From the sequence record ON287375.1: DNA of 64,000 nt; one strand, given 5' to 3'. Numbering within the stretch: position 1 is the first letter of the stretch; each line of letters begins with the position of its first letter. The notes below the pieces were generated by a model. The model saw nothing but the letters and a program-made list of their open reading frames with translations. It was not told the DNA's origin and ran no database searches. Shown in pieces: positions 14,734-40,498 of this stretch. The position numbers and the translations under genes are program-made.

Positions 14734-16212
14734 TTATGCTTTATAGATAGAGCCAGTTCCAGATAAGGACCCTAAGTTGAAGTTCATTTCAACAGTATTA
14801 CCAATACCGTCATCAGCCAGATAAACAGTCCATGGGCCAGACCCGGAAGGAGCACTTACTATATTAGCACCCCTTAACCATATTAACTCCAAGTTACCAG
14901 TTAATTCAACAGGTGTACCGCCTATGGATCGCTGTTGTTTAGCTGTAAATATAAACTTAGAGTTCTTAGCCCCCTTGTCCAATACGACAGGAGATGCAGT
15001 AACTGAGAATGGTTGATCGCGGCAAGTTATAGATGGTAGCGTTACAACATATTCCCCATATTTAGTTTTAACAGTTACAGTACAGGAAGAACTACCATAT
15101 TTATAGCCAGAGGTATAACTTACTTCGTATTCACCATTGGCAGAATTACTAGCTTTAAACCCACTGCCAAAATTACTAAATGATGTAGAAGGTGAGTTAT
15201 TAGTTCTCGATACGTATGTCGCATCTGTGACTATCTCACCCGTATCATAAACCATCTTAAATTTCATGTTACCGTTAGACAATGAAATGATGGAACCTTC
15301 ACTCAAGAGGCTTGCTTTAATTGATTTTGGTTTAGCTAGTAAATTAAAACTAACCTTCAAGGTCATTGGCCAAGTATAACCTTCCTGGGTAACATCAAAC
15401 TTAAACGTTACTTCATGAGTGATGTCATTAGTTATTTCTTTAATGACTTCCCAAGAACCTTGTGCATCAAATTTTAAGTATTCACTAGTGCAAACTAAGT
15501 TGGTAATAGATGAAGTAATGTCTTCACCTTTACCATTTGTAATTTTAATTGGCATGGTCCCTTTATCACCGTAAACTATCGAGGTGATAAGTTTCTCAGC
15601 CTGTATTACGGGTTCCCAGCAGACATTGAGCGTATGTGAAATACTAGATGAATACAGGTTAAGATTAAAATTAAAGTTGGTAGAAAACACAGCTGGGTCT
15701 TTATTAATCTTACTTTCATTCATTTTTACGCTGAAGGAGTTTTCATCAGTTCCCACTATGGTGAAGGTATCAGAACTGGTGTTAACTAATGTTGGATCTT
15801 TCAGACTTACTGTTTGATCTCCATTCTTCAATGACATATTTATTTTGTAAGTATTATCAGAAGAATGTTTCACTTTGTTGGGTTCTGCAGTTACTATTAT
15901 TAACTCAGAAGCACCGATATCGACAGTAAGGTCTTGGGTTGAAATATCCTTTCCTTCCACATTACCATTTACATCTTTTCTGGCAAATACGATTTGTAAA
16001 TCAGACTTTGCTTTAGCCTTGGCGGTGAAGGGTACTTCTCCAGTGACACCATCTTCATTCGCCTTACACTCACCCAGGTTAATTGCATCTTTAAGTACTG
16101 AATTATCTTTGTCTATTGTCACTTCATTCGGTATAGGGGTGTTTCTGAATGTAGGACGATATACTATCTTTCCAGTTTGCCCTTCTAGTAAATTAATTAT
16201 TTTAGACACTAC
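14734..16212 (-). CDS. Ig-like repeat virion fibre segment 4, ~492 aa
   Basis: Likely GTG start at 16212, 5 nt after a GGAGG SD (track start 16221 has no SD); ~100-aa beta-rich repeats like those of the upstream genes. Confidence 0.8.
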   Translation of the reverse strand, partial: VVSKIINLLEGQTGKIVYRPTFRNTPIPNEVTIDKDNSVLKDAINLGECKANEDGVTGEVPFTAKAKAKSDLQIVFARKDVNGNVEGKDISTQDLTVDIGASELIIVTAEPNKVKHSSDNTYKINMSLKNGDQTVSLKDPTLVNTSSDTFTIVGTDENSFSVKMNESKINKDPAVFSTNFNFNLNLYSSSISHTLNVCWEPVIQAEKLITSIVYGDKGTMPIKITNGKGEDITSSITNLVCTSEYLKFDAQGSWEVIKEITNDITHEVTFKFDVTQEGYTWPMTLKVSFNLLAKPKSIKASLLSEGSIISLSNGNMKFKMVYDTGEIVTDATYVSRTNNSPSTSFSNFGSGFKASNSANGEYEVSYTSGYKYGSSSCTVTVKTKYGEYVVTLPSITCRDQPFSVTASPVVLDKGAKNSKFIFTAKQQRSIGGTPVELTGNLELIWLRGANIVSAPSGSGPWTVYLADDGIGNTVEMNFNLGSLSGTGSIYKA

Positions 16213-16300
16213 TTCCTCCATATATCAGCAGGTGGTTCTGTATGAATATCTTTATAATGATTAATACCTTTCTTCTTCATATCTTTGATCTCTAGTTAGA

Positions 16301-16309
16301 TGACCATAG
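16301..16309 (-). promoter_or_regulatory. putative late promoter, TATG core
   Basis: CTATGGTCA on the minus strand, identical to 40538-40546; phiKZ late promoters carry TATG at the start site. Confidence 0.5.
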
Positions 16310-16313
16310 AATT

Positions 16314-16341
16314 CGAACCTTACGGTTTCCCGTAAGGTTCG
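16314..16341 (-). terminator. hairpin after segment 3
   Basis: 12-bp perfect stem with a GAAA loop on the minus strand; U-tract only on the plus side, so possibly a processing/stability hairpin. Confidence 0.65.
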
Positions 16342-16346
16342 TTTTA

Positions 16347-19300
16347 TTAGATTATTTCAACATCAAACTCTGGTTTAGGGTTTGCATTTACATTGGTAGA
16401 CAGTTGAACTTCAGCCGTTAGTTCGGTGGTTATTCCGGCATAAACAACAATGAATTTCAGTTCTGCTTTCTTGGAGATAACATCTGAGGTATCCGATTTA
16501 ATAGATTTGAATACCCACTTGCCATTAGCATTTTTACTGAATTCAAAATCATCTTTGATATCATCGTTATTAGTACAGACAATATCAGTCACGCTGGAAG
16601 CCACACTTACATCGCCACTCTTCACATCATAGGAAAGTTCTTTCTCTTCCCACAGATCAAAAGTATATTCCGTTACAAGATCAGTTAGAACTGGCGTCGG
16701 TGGATTAATATTGACAACAAGATCGATTTCTTTCACATAGGTCGTCATGAACTCAGTACAAGTAAACTTGACTTTGATATTAGCAATCCCGGTTTCACCT
16801 TTAGGTTCGCACTTAATAATGAAACGACCATTGCTTGGTTCACGAGTAATCGACCCAATTATAGTAAGCGAATTATCAACAGATATTAATTCACATTTAC
16901 CAGCAGGAATATATTTTTGAGGTCCTGGAACTAGCGGAACTTCTAGTTGGAAGTAAGTAGTGTACTGTTTATCATCATTAGTGATGGTATTATCAGTCTG
17001 AACTACTTCTGGTTCAGTACCTTGAGTGGTTAATGGTTGACTAACAACTTTGCTACTTAACCCATCAACATCCATATACCAAATAGGCGTGAATGTAGCT
17101 TGCGCCCAACCCACTGCGATATTGGACTCGTAACGACCTGGTTTATCTTTATCTTCTTTGAGATGAGAATAACCAGTATAACCATTATTGCGTTTTTCAC
17201 CATCAGAGAAATCATAATAATAACAGGTGAGGTCAGTTGCAGGAGCACCGTCAGCGTAATTGAGATCAAATACTACTTTGTTATCACCCTGTGTTAGAAT
17301 AGGATCACTAACTGGAACTAATGTTAATTCCTTCCCTATCCCAATAGGGAGACTGATTTCAAGAGTACCCTGTTTACCCAGCTTAGGATTAACTGCATTA
17401 ACCGTACCAGTAATCTTAACTGTTCCATCGGCAGCTTTAGACTTAAGTTTAAAGACTGTCATGGTAGGGTTCTTATCCGCCTGAGCTGGTTCATTAACAA
17501 ATTCGGCATTATCAGATATGGTGAAATCATCATAAGTAAATTGTAATTTACTATTATAGATGAGAACCGGGTTATTAGTTCCCAACCCAGTCCAGCTTGC
17601 CTGCATCAAGGAGAACTTAAAGTCAACCTCACTACCCCCTTGTGGAAGCATACTAATAGGGACTAACTCTTCTAACCTTAATGGCGGCTTGATGATGTTA
17701 ACACTAAATTGCTTAACAGTGAACTCTTTCTCACCAGATTTGATCACTAAATCAAACAGAGCCGAGTCAATACCTTTATCACATTTGATGCCTAGTCTGT
17801 AGATGTTATCAGCAACCTTGGTCAGAGATTCACCCACGCTGAAGATACCGGATCCTGTTTCAGGAACATTAGTGGTTTTAACAGAAACAAGTTCTGCATC
17901 AGTCACTGGACCTTTAACATTATTATCGAGTTTAAATTCAAGATAACATGGAAGATCTCTATTGGTATTCTCAGGATCAACCTGCATTATCTCCAGGTCT
18001 GCTTGAGGTGTGGCGGTAACCTCTTCCTTGACACCATCACGTACAGTCACTTCAAGCACTAAGTCATCATAGGTATAAAGGATACCCTGTATTTCCTCAG
18101 AAACGCTAAAGGTGAGTGTTTGCGTAGTATTAGGTTGTTCAGATGAAATATACCCGGTTGCGTTACCTTTACCTAAAAAGGTGTATGGTCTATCGATCTT
18201 CAAGCCATCACTTGATTTTTGAGAAACTACTGTAGTACCAAATGAAATTGAGGTCTCACCATCAATCCTAACTTGTCTGGTGAAGAAAATTCCCATCATG
18301 GTAGACTTGAACGGATCTATTACCGCTCCGACTCTACTTACTGTAACTGGAGAACCTTCTGTCTTGAATTCCAGTTTGGAATCAATATCGTATTTAACAC
18401 CGGCGATAGTTAGCTCAGGAATAATAGTAACTGTACCTGGGAGATAGCCAACATCAACGATCATGGTATAAATAGATGTATCTGCGGTACCCTGGGTAAA
18501 CTCACCAGGAACATTACTAACAACATCATTAGTCGGTACAGAAGTTATTGTAGAGTTTACGATCTTACCAGGTTGATGGAGATATTCACCTTTAGAGTTC
18601 AGGACACGGGCAACAACAGTTGCTTTCTTCAGATAACCCAGATCTTCATCTGTCAGCAATTCAACAGTTAAGGTATCCTTCTCTACAATAATATCATGAT
18701 CCACACTTAAAAGTCTGCTATCTGGCGAGGCAGAGAAAGTCCCATAGATGTTAATATTTTCCACTTTACCATTTGGAATAATGGTTATCTTACCTTTACC
18801 ATCTGCATCTAAGGTCACCTTCCCTGAAAGGTCGGCAACCATTCCGCCGGTAATTTCTAATTTAACAAAGGTCCCTTGTAGTGGAGAATTTGGTCTAGCG
18901 TATTTATCTTGCGTACCAAATATCTCTATCTCAGTTGGGCCGTCTGTTGCGAATACCTTATTAGGGGTAAAGGTAAATTTACCTGGGGTACCTGGGGTTT
19001 TATAGGTCTTTTTAGGAATAACAAAATCAAAGCCATCCTTAGATAACGTCATATCAATATTAAATGAACCTGATAAATGCCCTAAATTAATATTAATCGC
19101 ATAAATCCCATCTGGCTTGGTATCTACAATTATCCCGCTATACCCCGGAACTAAATCTGGAGTATTTGGACTTCCAACTGCCTTAAGATTTTTTAATGTA
19201 ACTCCCTCTACAGGCACTCCCTGATCATCAGTTACTTTAAAGTAAATGCGATTGGAACTTGCGCCCACTAATTCTTCATCCTTGGTGATCCACTCAGCAT

Positions 19301-19562
19301 TAAGATTAAACTTAGGCTGAGGTTTCTTATTGAGGAAGGTCATCGGGACGACCGTCTTATACTGATCTTTATAAACAAATGTCAGGTTCAGTTTATATTC
19401 AGTATCTTGATCAACTTCCTTAAGGAATTTATAAGTTATGGTATCTTCCGTCTTGGAGGAAATCTGGACTCCCTCATGAGAGTCCAGTGTGATTACCATA
19501 TCAGGATCAAGGTTACTGATAGTCTGACCATCCACTTGTGCAGCTTGTTTAAGCGTGCTCAT
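16347..19562 (-). CDS. Ig-like repeat virion fibre segment 3, 1071 aa
   Basis: Long ORF, SD aagga overlapping the upstream TAA, ~10 beta-rich repeats. Confidence 0.88.
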   Translation of the reverse strand: MSTLKQAAQVDGQTISNLDPDMVITLDSHEGVQISSKTEDTITYKFLKEVDQDTEYKLNLTFVYKDQYKTVVPMTFLNKKPQPKFNLNAEWITKDEELVGASSNRIYFKVTDDQGVPVEGVTLKNLKAVGSPNTPDLVPGYSGIIVDTKPDGIYAININLGHLSGSFNIDMTLSKDGFDFVIPKKTYKTPGTPGKFTFTPNKVFATDGPTEIEIFGTQDKYARPNSPLQGTFVKLEITGGMVADLSGKVTLDADGKGKITIIPNGKVENINIYGTFSASPDSRLLSVDHDIIVEKDTLTVELLTDEDLGYLKKATVVARVLNSKGEYLHQPGKIVNSTITSVPTNDVVSNVPGEFTQGTADTSIYTMIVDVGYLPGTVTIIPELTIAGVKYDIDSKLEFKTEGSPVTVSRVGAVIDPFKSTMMGIFFTRQVRIDGETSISFGTTVVSQKSSDGLKIDRPYTFLGKGNATGYISSEQPNTTQTLTFSVSEEIQGILYTYDDLVLEVTVRDGVKEEVTATPQADLEIMQVDPENTNRDLPCYLEFKLDNNVKGPVTDAELVSVKTTNVPETGSGIFSVGESLTKVADNIYRLGIKCDKGIDSALFDLVIKSGEKEFTVKQFSVNIIKPPLRLEELVPISMLPQGGSEVDFKFSLMQASWTGLGTNNPVLIYNSKLQFTYDDFTISDNAEFVNEPAQADKNPTMTVFKLKSKAADGTVKITGTVNAVNPKLGKQGTLEISLPIGIGKELTLVPVSDPILTQGDNKVVFDLNYADGAPATDLTCYYYDFSDGEKRNNGYTGYSHLKEDKDKPGRYESNIAVGWAQATFTPIWYMDVDGLSSKVVSQPLTTQGTEPEVVQTDNTITNDDKQYTTYFQLEVPLVPGPQKYIPAGKCELISVDNSLTIIGSITREPSNGRFIIKCEPKGETGIANIKVKFTCTEFMTTYVKEIDLVVNINPPTPVLTDLVTEYTFDLWEEKELSYDVKSGDVSVASSVTDIVCTNNDDIKDDFEFSKNANGKWVFKSIKSDTSDVISKKAELKFIVVYAGITTELTAEVQLSTNVNANPKPEFDVEII

Positions 19563-19577
19563 GGTTGGGACTATTCC

Positions 19578-24227: not shown

Positions 24228-24247
24228 GGTTATTGGCCCTATTAGTA

Positions 24248-33200: not shown

Positions 33201-34369
33201 CCTACTTGTTCAACAGTATTAGGGAAGTTGGTGCTCAAATGACCTTCATAGATCATAGAACCATCGGTATCATGACCTGTGAATTTCAGAGGACCAAAGT
33301 TACCTTGCTGGAGCATCTGGGAAGGTGGCGCTGTGATCTTAACTTCTTTACCTTTGTAGAAAGCTTTGATCTTAACAATTACATCAGAACCAGAAGGAGC
33401 TGTAACTGTAGGGGGATCAATCTCAAAGGTCAGATCAAGTTCATTATCTTTCTCGATAATTACATTGATCTTAAACGTTTTCTTAACGGGACGGTTTTGC
33501 CACATATAGGTAACACGGACAAAGATCTCATCGTGAACTTCTTTCTCAGCAGAACCATAAATGGTTTCACCCAGAATGAAGTTACCGTCTTCAGAACGTT
33601 TAGGAATAGTGTAACCAGAACCCGTACTGATCTCGATCTGAGCTTCATGGGTAATGTCGATCGTGGTGTTGAACCAGTAAGTGTTTGGGATGCTGAAGTC
33701 TTTACCACGTTGAGTAGTAATAGACTCTGGCAAGTTAGACGTGATTCCAGGGACATTAGCTTCATCCAGAACCAGTTCATAAATGAACAGCGGATAAGTA
33801 CCAGTACCGAAAGACGCATCAGTGATTTTAACAGTACCTGATTCCAGGGTGTCGTAATCAATGAAAGTCAGAGATTCACGTTCAGTGACATACTCACTAA
33901 AGAACAGTTCACCAAAAGCAGCCATTGGGCCAGAGATAGTCTTAGCTTCTTCTTGAGAAACCAATACACCATAGTTGTTCAACCACTTACACCATAACAG
34001 TGCATGATCAACTTTATTGGCTTTAACATAAGCTTTCAAGTTATCCAGGTCTTCGATCTCGATCATAGGAACGGCGAAGTCTTCCAGGATATCTTTCATC
34101 TGTACACGAGTGATGTCGACGTCAACACGTGCAAAACCGGTTTTGCGCGCAGTAAAGCAAACGCGAGTAATACCATCTGGGAATGCTACTGGATTCTCAA
34201 TAACTAAATCACCAGCAACAAGTCCAGTGTAACGCTCTTTAGCGAGAGCTAACTCGTCCTCAGGTCCTTCAACCTCAAGGCGTTTGATACGTTCCTTTAA
34301 GAAACGCTCAACAGGCGTGTATAACGGATCGTTAATACACTTTTTGTTAATCTTAATTTGCTCTGCCAT
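24248..34369 (-). CDS. giant Ig-like repeat virion fibre segment 1, 3373 aa, with conserved N-terminal domain
   Basis: Start at ATG 34369 (MAEQIK) after aggag SD; ~200-aa N-domain plus ~29 repeats of ~100-115 aa. Confidence 0.92.
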   Translation of the reverse strand: MAEQIKINKKCINDPLYTPVERFLKERIKRLEVEGPEDELALAKERYTGLVAGDLVIENPVAFPDGITRVCFTARKTGFARVDVDITRVQMKDILEDFAVPMIEIEDLDNLKAYVKANKVDHALLWCKWLNNYGVLVSQEEAKTISGPMAAFGELFFSEYVTERESLTFIDYDTLESGTVKITDASFGTGTYPLFIYELVLDEANVPGITSNLPESITTQRGKDFSIPNTYWFNTTIDITHEAQIEISTGSGYTIPKRSEDGNFILGETIYGSAEKEVHDEIFVRVTYMWQNRPVKKTFKINVIIEKDNELDLTFEIDPPTVTAPSGSDVIVKIKAFYKGKEVKITAPPSQMLQQGNFGPLKFTGHDTDGSMIYEGHLSTNFPNTVEQVGGLYTAEFTYNEGDVTSKAPAYVNVILTRPETAPKFEIRSFPAVIRGYKNDKGLLTVGAFYNNEPISPTDLQIKTGVKGDKGLIEYNSVDQLGVNYTLIKDANKPGQEIQDVYDQRFAWIAPTGVRYTITRQVTVIVAQVSTVEVVPLYPNPIEVKKYQFGGYPFKLLVNGADVTGGISGYQFEDPSEYITHKKGSDVQWIVTKTPGADEESIVTKVPFKFRYTVDGVWRDFTFEQNFRVLPWNPDTGEGGNTDTVAVPANVKIEGLSDSTGYFEFQVYHLADDITDRAVVMKDKLVTPKGIRFDSFSYIPETNVIRANYTKLDPTTEPGKVYIQRPGVDDPKTGDIAIVSITTDVKQSRVLVLSDYDKNTTVEVAGSPELAHITLMFAGKVVPLTDANLSYKRLDETDIRFVDIKDDGIEVVNNIWEYIGETRQSGVDLEYTYTDPLDGNKTKVRFTLPVFTVYPEMRLENAPATIDAAIWDTGTLPYNIIAGKTNWNGAVTSITPIGTSKYIAFNVFNWEVIWAEKEATTITVPLEIKWTVGQAKNRKFITEVTFNLPAWDQITFGGQLDTKSITKDSRVEGSITGNFVYKGKPADDDVVLDKAMSTIPETFIMGVSAPVENKGVVVGYTTTRGGKYLMTLIYRHVPSNLTMSFDIPTDIAWPHELNLVNITKSISGVWESEQTIDLVYNFDGIPLTLNDPKLKLTATSGAGEPVELVKVNDESLTIKLAKGGEQDTDYDYEFKIHVEYTDPTGKLWTNDNTVPVKIHIPGVKIGANPSFNVKVWERGIVGITLVDDQGRKVPIEKLTPRGTNPYITFTEPDNWYVTSGSQTNSITTTLRLSAQYSMGGNTYTLDTESTFTIAKYDGKKLVITEGPKELSGKAGTPGVMKFRFTYAGDPAKNLTVDLTKSTIPKNITLGEITPDGDLPYTLLGQATDTLTITFVRENATNPPVVNDDYVTTTVKVTTTSSDEVFTVESKTPAITIPWMETGTIVLALKYGEYPILGNTPGLKYSLVDNGKPHAIHIVGGTADGVIIQATRSNVSEALTVYPEDIKVTYEVGAPTPKEGTISSKVSIQMGKVGITNNDPIKGKIWDLGSFGQGIKMGDKVLSPIQGYKTTQPENEWIEFIAPRGWEIINAEKTPSTKTIGMQVLYKVDEVEEVQVLDFDASFEIQGSDDPTRFKCTVSPSNLEGAVDVESKLKVRPIYKGKQVGAAATFKPELSTFPKSLKYVSHSMAGVDFELVFEGVEAGLGEMELVFWSPAAGTDPAPRDVWKGKVPTKIMGELGVEIADRDNLLIGKDGDTGEYKLQILFGGIPIDAKQEIANGALKITVEKGEGSSPNAGVLTVTDWNAESFNYSLKGVVAPGREVTVSDFMNITYTYGGNNFTRRVEIPEKYTSAPVAIVPVTPKACKMFETSQIGITSAKCGDLNLLTPSLPSPAESGWMNCELDEEQPNGYITVSVKNFTVVNADVTAKSLTLKMIYNGIYRNWTWKGEAEVVFNIAPWDQKTFIAHFMRGNPSQPIAGDRLALSLEMPMDDESILFETQTVFKDKVSFNDVDTLDYLDTDLKGVLELNKSSPLGGTGASDNRRRYFGQAVSPYEGEIKLVFRVPNSPKPGVENLDWTALYLDCKFIYKPLLVTGINNNLKGGNGDKGTLPLTVKLNDKNIPINDANLKYTMVPDDIIKVTGSTTTGYTYEVITPLDAELGKREIKFSLEYKDPATGFTHKGEFTQPFEVVKPADYPIITPIRVSVAPFNRVGGSTIFKITVNGVDVVSQCKPISITPVNSADEGVLVLAGDEANDNAWMWCTDYHIGNPPSAEIKTTWVIEVPFRGGTIQVPDVVLPTLVASSTSHAVWIQGTGAPNPFPLGDGYEDEIRFKITNRGLPTTKVTLDEAAGSYGPYFEVISVEPDGDEMVLKYKGKSSFFAKFNFYWKVEGYDGTNDTQQRGVVQLNAYQIPSIESVTDPLSLKIFQQFELPFKVMAGTTDITKLCTWTAVDTDYIEIFRPINTQLGPSGQVVKADTTEVKKEVIFTIQSPASHGNLTLTQKVNIIIAAWDQIEFYGIPTTGFVKQDDGLVVPIPFTNTWNAVIVQAMMMNKVRPNGGGVSSLSDFLKITSSDPDAVTQISQISDGNGVTSRIMPNKAGKFPGTMVLRYKGNAAEASAPNGYPAGTEGKNQSTIDVTWYVFEDKITFREGFEPKPLIIPNGSTAVIDVPFDAVWGLRQVMINSTAEVNFVGLSHDTGIASLFGQNNTTGTNRFNWDKDRYKIQPAKITVGESDVTSYYTFNIQWINPINKKNYSFSYDQPIIFKGKEGAKDPVLTVTDVQEVTTDVWKKQTGLPFKLAIDGVNYPIDTSTVTSVKVADADKAWLEAGPKLTDGYRVIDGDPEPSVKEGTFILTVVQGPRTWEIEQKVKFNISAYDGNSLRMNIRLPNSFNNGVAIPVNTNTLIMFEGTFQGVALTNNYNKLSYWPAKSSQTQIEVYGQTFQQMYYQLSAKGILDSQDSEQATYCIGFKEKENDPNAKEGVDYVILTIPTYCYNPNRFYPVTWDPVIEGMAGTNLNYKWNFTLRRGIVASKLGSGTNAASSTDIKPAGVLNRTGFSDNQLEYAFASEIDVATKETDMTIMIGNTSDFDTMAARFPVKAIQHTNVPFPTIKDPQTELTVHYNDTGAVPFKVDWKGTDVTDQISIVRISDNSYIEIKDKQWHVKHADPQTVKVMPTIEADIVLDSVTFTLKQQVTFTVLGYNGKQINVEAGFALLMVDEVGYLEIKGDYSGDPLSGNVIFDAANSDNGGIVTFGAYEFTTNESMVIKLTGKAPGEDGVRIRIKSVHDTGNGNIGSDYVDLYPKVTVLPKELTPAARFETTGEGNYWEPPVLGQAVMLGDKPLANTDSDLIIEILDYPDVTIKTLSSATVGYSFTNNSDTEIKHQFKQKFTYKGRSEYVVDITLTQLPSPTTPFVTDITQIDAEYGKSYLAPFKVISPR

Positions 34370-37390: not shown

Positions 37391-40300
37391 TTAAGGTTCT
37401 ATAGTGAGTGTGATACGGGTACTTTGGGAACTACATTTAACATCGGCATTGCTAAACCAAATTTCATAGTCAGTGCTAGCTTTACTCATGACATAACAGG
37501 TAAAGGTCACAGTCTTTTCATCAATGGCTTTGGCGTCTCTGATCCAGTTAAATGTATTGGTTCCGCCTTCTGTAGCTCCATAGGTGTAATCTCGTTGTAC
37601 CACGAACTTATCAGAAGTTATTCCGTTTTCTGGAAGTTTGACAGTGAATACAGCAAGATCCCTTTCTTTATCGTAGACAACCGATACATTACCAGGGTCA
37701 ACTGGGATATAGTCAAACTCTGTTCTATAGGTATATTCGACACCATCAGCTAAGATGACAATATTAGTCGCACCGCTATCAGGTTTATTGATACCGTTTA
37801 TATGCATACTTAAACTTCCGGTACCATAAAGACCTTGGGATGCCTTAGTGATACTTAGTGGTCCAGTACCTTCCCAAATACCAGGTTCGAATCCTTTCAC
37901 TTCCCATTTATCAACGTAGACAGTGTTTCCTTTCTCGTCGATAACTCTGAATATTCCAGGGGTACTATACTTGACCATGTTCCCCCATTCACCCACTAGT
38001 TGTTTACCACCAGTATACCCGTACCGTTGTTCAAAGGAGATTTTAGGGTAACCGATATATCCATACGCTGAACCAACACCTTCCATGAGAAGAGTATCAA
38101 CAACAGTTTCATCTAAACGGTTGAACTTAAGTCCATAACCTGTATCATTCTCGGTTATGTTCACGCTGTTCCATGGAGCACCATTCAGTTTCACATTACC
38201 ATAAATACTTGGCTTGGTAACTGGGGTTTTAGCTGGGTCATTAAAGAAGAACTTAATCTTACCATCAAACTGGAATTTAACATCTGTGGCATCTAAAGAT
38301 TCAGGTTCTGCAATAATACCAGTAGCTCCTGCTGGCATCGGCATTAGACCTTCAAAGGTCCCATTCATATAGGTTGATGAGTTAGGAACGCTCTTATCAT
38401 CAAACCAAAGGTTATTGGTAACAGATGTTGCTTCAGAGAACTGTGGTGCCGTAAAGGTTATACGGTACATGTCCTCATTTCTAGCATTAGCGGTTTTTAT
38501 TTCTGAATCGAATGTTTTCTTAGTTCCATTCTCAGTATAAGTCAATAAAGCAGTGGAAGCGCAGATAAGGTTTTTAGCTGAAGTATCCTCTCCAGATACG
38601 CCTATATCCATGCTTGCCATTGACGTACTGGTACTCATCCCACTATACTGATTGAAGAAGATTTTCTTTCTTTCAATTTCTTTACTGAAAGTAATCTCAT
38701 CAGAACCATTAACTAATACACCAGAGATCTTAGATTTGGTTGGTGCATCTGGATTCAACTGGAATGATAATGTATAGTGTTCGCCGTCAGGAGTCGCATT
38801 GATAGGTTCCAGTACAAACCCAGTACCGGCGATATCCTTATAAGACCATTTATCAGCTTGAGCTTTAGGGTAACTACCAGTTACGGTCAGAACACCTAAT
38901 TTAAGATCAGAAACCTCTACATCCATAGCGGCTTGCTTGACATCAGTAGTCATTGTGATCGATGCATCAGGAACATCAAGGTAGTCTGGGAATGAGAAGT
39001 TTACAACGGTCTCCAGAGACAAGTTATCCGTTTCTAAGGCTTTGTCCTTGACTGAGAATTTTAACAATTGTTTCTGAGTAAGATCTTTATCAACAATTTC
39101 ATAATCGACTACCTCACCACCGACTTTAGTTACGATAGTAATGGTCGGGTTAACCGCATCACTATTGTTGGATGGGAACTTATACTCAACTTCATAATTA
39201 ACCAACTTACTTTCGATATCAAAAGTATTCTTAACTTCTTTTAATTCCACAGCTTCTTTAGGCGTAGGTGGAACTAGCTTATAAAACCAACTTGGACTAT
39301 TGAAGGTGCTGAATGCAACTTGACGATCAAGCTCACCTTTAAGAATTACATTACCGGTGAAGTAGCGAAGTGCTGGAGCTTCTGGATTATAATCATAAGG
39401 GCCAGTAAAGTTAATGACGCCAGCAGAAGGGGAAGTGATGTCAGTGGCTACTGCATCTTTCATTTCCTCATCCCCACCATTAATAAGGTAAGCTTTATTA
39501 AGGTCGAGAGTTCCCACACTGTCTTCATAAGTAAGTGTGATTTGAGCTTTATCTTCGCTCAACTGTTTTACTGCGCCAGAGAGTCTCAAGACTTTAGGTG
39601 CCGCATGGTTGATATTGTAAGAATAGATCTCATTATCAACCTTCATCATACCTTGCGCCATAAAGATACGATCAGTTAAAGCGTCGGTATTATATTCCCA
39701 GCTCACTACCATACACTGACCATTTTCAGTGATTTCCTGAGTGGTCTTGATATTGAGAAGATCGGTACTTTTAGTTGGATCATTAACAACCCAAGCAGTA
39801 GGTGTTCCTTTATTACCATCTTTATCTAGCAAGTAGATATTTGCAGTCATCTTACCGTCGGCTAGTGAAACCACTTTAGAATCAACAGTGTATTTATTAG
39901 CTGCATCATTATAAGCTTTCTGTGAAGTAAGCTTAATGATCGTATCATTAATGGATGGGTCAATAATGGTTAAATCACCACTATAGATTTCATTCAATTT
40001 AGGGAACTCATCCCAGGTTATTTTAGAGAAGAAAATATTACCAAGCAGCTCAAGAACATTTGCTTTGAGATTATCGGTGTTGGGCAATATGATAACCAAC
40101 TGATCGGCATCTGTTCTATTAACAAGGAATCCAGGTTCAGGGATTTCTTTATTTAAGAAAGCTTTGAACTCATCTAACGTACTAGTGTTCTTTACTGGTA
40201 CATTGAAGGTTTCAAATATTTCTAAGATATTCTGCTTCTCTATCTCGATATCCACACGAGCAAAACCAGTCTTACGAACGGCAATGCAGACCATAACAGA

Positions 40301-40498
40301 ACCACTCTTAACTTTAGTAGCTGGCTCTATGGACACATCTTTGTAAGTTAGACCAGTATAACGTTCTTTAGCTAATGCTAGCTCATCTGCTGGACCATTA
40401 GCCTCTAGATCAGCTAAACGTTTATCAAGGGCTTTCTTAACACACAACCAGACAGGATCCTTTATGTTCTTGTCTTTTTCATCTAATACTACAGTCAT
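37391..40498 (-). CDS. putative virion fibre protein, 1035 aa, with conserved N-terminal domain
   Basis: SD ggagga; N-terminus homologous to the 3373-aa and 201-aa proteins; beta-rich repeats. Confidence 0.88.
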   Translation of the reverse strand: MTVVLDEKDKNIKDPVWLCVKKALDKRLADLEANGPADELALAKERYTGLTYKDVSIEPATKVKSGSVMVCIAVRKTGFARVDIEIEKQNILEIFETFNVPVKNTSTLDEFKAFLNKEIPEPGFLVNRTDADQLVIILPNTDNLKANVLELLGNIFFSKITWDEFPKLNEIYSGDLTIIDPSINDTIIKLTSQKAYNDAANKYTVDSKVVSLADGKMTANIYLLDKDGNKGTPTAWVVNDPTKSTDLLNIKTTQEITENGQCMVVSWEYNTDALTDRIFMAQGMMKVDNEIYSYNINHAAPKVLRLSGAVKQLSEDKAQITLTYEDSVGTLDLNKAYLINGGDEEMKDAVATDITSPSAGVINFTGPYDYNPEAPALRYFTGNVILKGELDRQVAFSTFNSPSWFYKLVPPTPKEAVELKEVKNTFDIESKLVNYEVEYKFPSNNSDAVNPTITIVTKVGGEVVDYEIVDKDLTQKQLLKFSVKDKALETDNLSLETVVNFSFPDYLDVPDASITMTTDVKQAAMDVEVSDLKLGVLTVTGSYPKAQADKWSYKDIAGTGFVLEPINATPDGEHYTLSFQLNPDAPTKSKISGVLVNGSDEITFSKEIERKKIFFNQYSGMSTSTSMASMDIGVSGEDTSAKNLICASTALLTYTENGTKKTFDSEIKTANARNEDMYRITFTAPQFSEATSVTNNLWFDDKSVPNSSTYMNGTFEGLMPMPAGATGIIAEPESLDATDVKFQFDGKIKFFFNDPAKTPVTKPSIYGNVKLNGAPWNSVNITENDTGYGLKFNRLDETVVDTLLMEGVGSAYGYIGYPKISFEQRYGYTGGKQLVGEWGNMVKYSTPGIFRVIDEKGNTVYVDKWEVKGFEPGIWEGTGPLSITKASQGLYGTGSLSMHINGINKPDSGATNIVILADGVEYTYRTEFDYIPVDPGNVSVVYDKERDLAVFTVKLPENGITSDKFVVQRDYTYGATEGGTNTFNWIRDAKAIDEKTVTFTCYVMSKASTDYEIWFSNADVKCSSQSTRITLTIEP

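Follow-up and report, generated by a model that had tools for sequence, protein, structure and literature searches.

In Serratia phage vB_SmaM-Yubaba (ON287375.1), a jumbo myovirus of 256 kb that belongs, among the relatives of phiKZ, to the OBP group, the boundary between two consecutive genes, here called g2 and g1, probably splits an immunoglobulin (Ig)-like domain in its A-A' loop. The C-terminal tail of the g2 protein would then complete the first domain of the g1 protein in trans and form a head-to-tail joint between the two. The analysis was made on a window of 64,000 nucleotides (nt) that is 100% identical to this record (window position = record position - 62000), and in which the ribonucleotide reductase beta gene is followed by an uninterrupted row of six genes, all on the minus strand. 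These encode proteins of 1035, 942, 3379, 1549, 1071 and 491 amino acids (aa), named g6, g5, g4, g3, g2 and g1 in this order; the g4/g3, g3/g2 and g2/g1 boundaries are referred to as junctions 1, 2 and 3. The proposal draws on the anatomy of the two protein ends, on their collinearity with intact domains, on conservation, on the disorder of the tail and on a pairing rule that is seen among the relatives.

All six proteins are annotated as hypothetical in GenBank, so any assignment is a new annotation. Scans of five of them against Pfam and PHROGs gave no matches, a search of PDB sequences with the first 300 aa of the 3379-aa protein and with the proteins of 1035 and 942 aa returned nothing meaningful, and scans of IMG/VR with g1 and with the g1 alignment found no relatives. 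Pseudomonas phage OBP has an equivalent row in gp207 to gp203, and Erwinia phage AH04 has one in gp197 to gp194. No alternative genetic code is apparent in the genome.

The tail of g2 and the first domain of g1

The g2 protein ends in ...AEVQLSTNVNANPKPEFDVEII, followed directly by TAA TAA. An earlier sequence-only reading of this DNA, in which g2 and g1 were segments 3 and 4, had described this end as a complete domain plus the tail NPKPEFDVEII, and both the sequence and the AlphaFold2 (AF2) model bear this out. The model of the last 330 residues shows three complete domains with a predicted local distance difference test score (pLDDT) of 84. The last of these (model residues 213-315) has pLDDT values of 72-92 per 10-residue block, and its final strand (303-315) stops at residue 1056 of the protein. 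The final 15 residues form a coil in which model residues 323-329 stay below a pLDDT of 50, and comparable inter-domain segments within the g2 chain have values of 88 and 91. A low-confidence coil after a complete last domain indicates that the tail is extra to that domain and has no place in g2 alone. It is thus a terminal extension outside the fold of its own subunit, which is what a donor strand has to be. The core of the tail, P-K-P-E-F-x-V (PKPEF[DN]V), is identical across five orthologues, even though the preceding domain in one of them (L010) has only 30% identity. The tail codons show synonymous differences among the orthologues, which suggests that selection acts on the peptide.

The g1 protein, the last of the row, begins with MSKIINLLEGQTGKIVYRPTFRNTPI... 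and has no C-terminal tail of the PKPEF type. Its start codon is the GTG at 16209-16207 and not, as the sequence-only reading had it, a GTG at 16212; the revised position is preceded by GGAGG and agrees with the coding sequence in GenBank and with the ATG found at the equivalent position in the relative L011. The AF2 model of g1, made with seven orthologues of 45-68% identity as input, consists of five beta-sandwich domains with a mean pLDDT of 83, and Foldseek matched it to generic Ig-like arrays only (SbsB, SbsC, titin and cadherin, E 1e-10 to 1e-14). Models and Foldseek matches together describe a tandem Ig-like array of repeated beta-sandwiches of about 100 aa. According to the DSSP assignment of the model, the first domain, D1, opens with strand A' (KIINLL, residues 3-8) and continues with strand B (GKIVYR, 12-17); in the second domain, D2, a further short strand (103-105) comes first. 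The mean pLDDT of D1 is about 73, as compared with about 87 for the other g1 domains. Both the model and the comparison with 33 internal copies described below show that D1 misses one strand of the fold, as is expected of an acceptor in a donor-strand system.

Iterated profile searches showed that D1-type domains recur inside the giant proteins, at about residues 659, 1011 and 1314 of g3 and at about 662, 974, 1279, 1591, 2267 and 3157 of g4. Further copies are found in OBP gp205-207 and AH04 gp196-197, which gives 33 internal copies. All 33 have, upstream of the G-x-x-G turn, a strand A (e.g. LVITE, FKCTV, EFVTE or FDVI), a short x-P-x loop and then A' (e.g. ELSG, NLEG, EFNG or KVNL). The g1 protein begins at the second of these segments and the g2 tail aligns with the first. 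As tail-like and start-like sequences are contiguous in the internal copies, the gene boundary corresponds to the A-A' loop, of which stop, spacer and start replace just 1-3 residues. The clearest intact match is OBP gp205 505-557, IPPVNFDVIGNSKVNLRVGEQ, to be compared with the split IPTNRFDVQFVQ*MANKVTLLQGQ (the asterisk marks the stop), and a second match across the junction is found in g3 at residues 990-1031, PVPKAEFVTEPIDTEFNGVKGAE. Both are better comparators than residues 428-462 of the 3379-aa protein, the internal domain to which the sequence-only reading had appealed and which is a weak profile match of 5.3 bits.

As a separate observation, the D1-type domains are spaced by about 310 residues along the giant proteins (the three g3 positions and the first four in g4), which suggests a three-domain super-repeat.

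In the mechanism that we propose, g2 would carry strand A as a C-terminal tail of 10-14 residues and the D1 domain of g1 would start at A'. After separate translation, the g2 tail would insert as the missing edge strand of D1, and the resulting joint would be non-covalent and head to tail. It would place g1 at the distal end of a fibre made from four consecutive gene products (3379, 1549, 1071 and 491 aa), and a joint of this strand type would dictate the order of the fibre segments. The g1 protein would be made from an expression unit of its own, with a hairpin, a TATG late-promoter motif and a leader micro-ORF (ORF, open reading frame) of 23 codons. Binding, strand geometry, promoter activity and the location of the proteins in the virion are what we infer here.

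Several observations weigh against this mechanism. AF2 folds D1 by itself, at lower confidence than the other g1 domains, and D1 may therefore not need strand A for its stability. Folding was done on shallow alignments (4-7 sequences), and DSSP and alignments were the only basis on which strands were paired. The claim of the sequence-only reading that the g2 stub and the g1 start make up one domain holds as far as collinearity with intact copies is concerned, but the tail adds just +2.4 to +4.7 bits to the internal-domain profile score (p ~0.04-0.13 per junction, relative to random 14-mers of the same proteins, a pool that is itself rich in A strands). The gain is weaker still when the five most junction-like copies are removed from the profile. 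Finally, that the row proteins are fibre components of the virion is inferred from their architecture and from late-promoter-like motifs only, and their union in a single fibre is a proposal.

Pairing of tails and acceptor domains in related phages

A related tail, ...N-x-N-D-G-S-I-P-x-N-R-F-[DNS]-[VI]-x-x-x* (with the stop again marked by an asterisk), is found in OBP and AH04 and in five more contigs of metagenomic phages. A scan for the C-terminal pattern P..F[DNS][VI]..*, which covered 919 stop-to-stop ORFs in a set of 12 phage genomes or contigs, gave 19 matches, namely 18 genes of the row and one spurious ORF of 79 aa. For every one of the 18 tail-ending row genes, the next gene, 7-176 nt on, starts with a strand-less D1. 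A search of the whole library with HMMER and the D1 profile turned up at least nine other protein clusters (50% identity) that open directly with D1. The boundary itself recurs in the 12 genomes or contigs, and an artefact or a pseudogene was rejected on this ground.

Some proteins carry both ends, an N-terminal D1 and a C-terminal tail. These adaptors, of 201-416 aa, comprise L007 (OBP gp204), L008 (AH04 gp195), L013-L016 and three of the other clusters that open with D1, P0017, P0021 and P0022 (225, 415 and 416 aa). With such ends they would be modules that can be chained in a defined order. Terminal proteins, including g1, are without the tail. No adaptors occur in Yubaba and its close relatives, so their g2 would join the terminal protein directly.

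The pairing rule bears on what the tail may bind. It could be a conserved docking peptide that attaches elsewhere, to another surface of g1, to an assembly factor or to another virion protein, with its likeness to strand A being a relic of the gene split. The conservation and disorder of the tail would suit any short linear binding motif, and the weak profile gain of the tail as strand A also speaks for this. We nevertheless consider a docking peptide unlikely, because all 18 tails are adjacent to a domain that lacks exactly strand A, and because tail and g1 start are collinear with intact domains in which only the few A-A' loop residues are replaced. A neutral gene fission, after which g2 and g1 would be unassociated, D1 stable without strand A and the tail vestigial, is in line with the folding of D1 alone in AF2 and with the promoter-like motif of g1, which could then be an independent protein. 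Such a history is improbable in our judgement. A vestige would not remain invariant beside a domain that drifts to 30% identity, nor would it persist at every junction in Pseudomonas, Erwinia and Serratia phages and on the adaptors as well.

Insertion of the tail as a non-covalent strand of D1 was also weighed against a covalent joint. An isopeptide bond between a D or N of the tail and a lysine of D1 would resemble a natural SpyTag/SpyCatcher pair, a kind of joint that calls for an invariant Lys, an Asp or Asn and a catalytic acid, and D or N does follow the conserved F in 17 of the 18 tails. The tail of L013 has Ser at that position (RFSVELL), and no lysine of D1 is invariant in the family, since OBP or AH04 has another residue in place of each of K3, K14, K64, K66 and K87 of g1. 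The isopeptide joint was rejected on these grounds, and we regard it as extremely improbable.

The spacer between g2 and g1 and the other junctions

The genes g2 and g1 are in different frames and separated by 137 nt, a slightly longer spacer than the 134 nt first counted in the sequence-only reading. Other elements that were reported for the spacer were all found again, namely the hairpin (16314-16341), CTATGGTCA at 16309-16301 and an in-frame stop just upstream of g1, which is a TGA at 16227-16225, six codons 5' of the start. These features bear on the possibility that recoding (readthrough, frameshift or bypass) or an event at the RNA level makes one polypeptide of the two ORFs. The very short spacers at junctions 1 and 2 (20 and 15 nt) would favour such a joining. 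At junction 3, however, there is a double TAA, stops in every frame, a change of frame and the TGA before the start. Within its 137 nt the spacer also has the hairpin, the promoter-like motif and a micro-ORF that is conserved in its own right. In the relatives, the spacers at the equivalent type of junction are 12-150 nt long and of unrelated sequence, and an Rfam search of the Yubaba spacer returned no family. No single recoding event with a conserved signal would join the two genes, and programmed recoding is therefore excluded at junction 3, as the sequence-only reading had also argued; to any joining by recoding or at the RNA level we assign hardly any weight.

The spacer RNA folds with z = -5.6 relative to shuffles, a hairpin is found at the corresponding place in all relatives, and hairpin and TATG motif are kept together in all seven relatives of the Yubaba clade. 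A hairpin followed by ATYCTATGKYCA occurs three times in the row, 29-84 nt before the starts of g6 (40548-40539), g5 (37347-37338) and g1 (16311-16302), and in the g5-g4 spacer, before g4, a hairpin is followed by a looser TATG. The late promoters of phiKZ have the consensus TATG, with the G as transcription start (PMC4666361), and are read by the non-virion RNA polymerase. The candidate promoter described here resembles them in that TATG precedes the first ORF of its unit by 25 nt, stands just 3' of the hairpin and is repeated before g5 and g6; it differs in its extended consensus ATYCTATGKYCA, which is specific to the Yubaba clade. Given the sites with hairpin and TATG before g6, g5, g4 and g1, the row appears to be organized in four late transcription units, i.e. 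g6, g5, g4-g3-g2 and the micro-ORF with g1. The separate promotion of g1 that the sequence-only reading had claimed is plausible in view of the conserved candidate promoter. The spacers at the equivalent type of junction in the relatives occur with or without hairpin and TATG, and this variability implies that a separate promoter is not intrinsic to the joint.

The spacer is not entirely non-coding, as it contains the micro-ORF, which the sequence-only reading had missed. The micro-ORF is present in 7/7 relatives with 18-26 codons, starts 23-27 nt after TATG and has the core MKK[KQN]GI[NSD]H..DI.TEPP. Substitutions at its three codon positions number 40:28:126 and are thus concentrated at third positions. 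Among the relatives it ends between 13 nt before and 8 nt after the g1 start, and in Yubaba its TAG shares the G with the GTG of g1 (one-base overlap). Since the stop overlaps or abuts the start of g1, the micro-ORF probably encodes a leader peptide, and its position suggests that it is translationally coupled to g1.

Table 1. Features at the g2-g1 boundary, in window coordinates.
Feature	Position	Strand	Basis or remarks
g1, 491 aa, five tandem Ig-like beta-sandwich domains	14734..16209	-	AF2, Foldseek; GenBank YUBABA_00790
D1, residues 1-101, proposed acceptor, without strand A	15907..16209	-	DSSP of AF2 model; alignment to 33 internal copies
Micro-ORF MKKKGINHYKDIHTEPPADIWRK, 23 codons, absent from GenBank annotation	16209..16280	-	Conservation in 7 relatives
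Shine-Dalgarno sequence GGAGG, 5 nt before the g1 GTG	16215..16219	-	Sequence
AATTCTATGGTCA, phiKZ-type late-promoter-like motif; TATG 16308-16305, G 16305 putative transcription start	16301..16313	-	Motif conservation and repetition
12-bp perfect hairpin with GAAA loop	16314..16341	-	Folding; probable 3'-end/terminator structure of the g4-g3-g2 transcript
Double stop TAA TAA at the g2 end	16344..16349	-	Sequence
Tail of g2, VNANPKPEFDVEII (1058-1071, with the core PKPEFDVEII), which would donate strand A	16350..16391	-	AF2, orthologues, alignment
Last domain of g2 (residues 954-1056), a complete beta-sandwich that has strands A and A' of its own	16395..16703	-	AF2 model
g2, 1071 aa, array of beta-sandwich domains	16347..19562	-	GenBank YUBABA_00800, hypothetical; no Pfam/PHROG match

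The other two junctions are built differently. At junction 2 (19563-19577), g3 ends with PVTLKQFVLKPE and g2 starts with MSTLKQAAQV, and the TLKQ strand is present twice. An intact copy in g4 (residues 3252-3347) has this strand once and aligns to junction 2 with an 11-residue gap (E = 2.5e-13); the duplication is kept in OBP and AH04. As the acceptor at junction 2 retains its own strand, this junction resembles strand exchange more than complementation. At junction 1 (24228-24247), g4 ends with ...APFKVISPR and g3 starts with MNNKQSSVVPFKVRS, with the segment PFKV.S duplicated.

At the other end of the proteins, residues 10-201 of g6 (39896-40471) and 16-211 of g4 (33755-34342) are similar over about 200 N-terminal aa (33% identity, E = 1e-24). 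The motif DPLYTPV..FLK.RI of this region also starts OBP gp207 and AH04 gp197, and the region common to g6 and g4 may be a shared anchor for two parallel fibres.

Taking the junctions together, it is conceivable, and put forward here tentatively, that OBP-like jumbo phages build fibres of more than 6000 residues from separate Ig-array proteins, in fixed order and without chaperones, by means of C-terminal donor strands. Junction 3 would be a case of pure complementation because its acceptor never encodes strand A, at junctions 1 and 2 strands would be exchanged, since the acceptors there retain a self-complementing copy, which would be displaced, and the adaptors would allow extension.

Comparison with known systems and meaning

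Chaperone-usher pili (Fim, Pap), which require a periplasmic chaperone and an usher, share two properties with what is proposed here, namely an Ig-like subunit that is short of one strand which the terminal extension of its neighbour supplies, and subunits, adaptors and terminators among them, that polymerize non-covalently, head to tail and in a defined order. In these pili it is the C-terminal strand G that is absent, and the next subunit donates it with its N-terminal extension (PMC13655056), whereas here the missing strand is the N-terminal A and the proposed donor a C-terminal tail. The phage subunits further differ from pilins in being multi-domain proteins of 200-3400 aa that are made in the cytoplasm, and there is no sequence relationship. 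Closest in polarity to the proposed g2-g1 joint are the type V pili (FimA, Mfa1), where a C-terminal donor strand fills the groove left by an absent N-terminal acceptor strand (PMC13655056). In type V pili, however, the subunits are lipoproteins whose N-terminal strand is present at first and is later cut off by a gingipain. The acceptor at junction 3 never encodes the strand, and junctions 1 and 2 are more like true exchange. Neither g1 nor g2 belongs to a pilin family of the chaperone-usher or type V kind: they have no Pfam match, no signal peptide is found in their sequences, which both begin directly with a domain, and their neighbourhood consists of phage genes. A chaperone, an usher and a protease, as used by the pili, are likewise absent from the system.

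The segments of the T4 long tail fibre are trimeric beta-structures. As far as we know, Ig-like domains do not make up these segments, and we know of no gene boundary among them that cuts a domain. The likeness to the row described here is that several consecutive late genes would give one fibre; in T4, gp34-gp37 are the products of consecutive late genes, with the segments joined end to end (PMC5537660). Strings of beta-sandwiches as in g1 and in the C-terminal part of g2 are also found in other tandem Ig-like arrays, such as the S-layer proteins SbsB and SbsC, titin, cadherins and Hoc-like phage decorations, and the likeness is at the level of the fold only (8-15% identity). We know of none of these that is split between genes within a domain.

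The best-supported reading of the g2-g1 boundary is thus a known principle, strand complementation in trans, in a place where none was described before, with the g2 tail as the strand that would bind D1. The literature searched contained no paper that connects donor strands with phage tail fibres. If the reading is true, this would be, as far as found in that literature, the first donor-strand complementation that serves as a joint between phage fibre proteins. It would explain why the giant genes of Pseudomonas, Erwinia and Serratia phages have fixed cut points within a domain, how the order of the segments is set and how adaptors lengthen or re-tip the fibre. A fibre assembled by donor strands would be a viral counterpart of donor-strand exchange in pili, and the junctions would represent a family of short natural peptide-domain pairs, orthogonal split-Ig connectors that could be used to link proteins.

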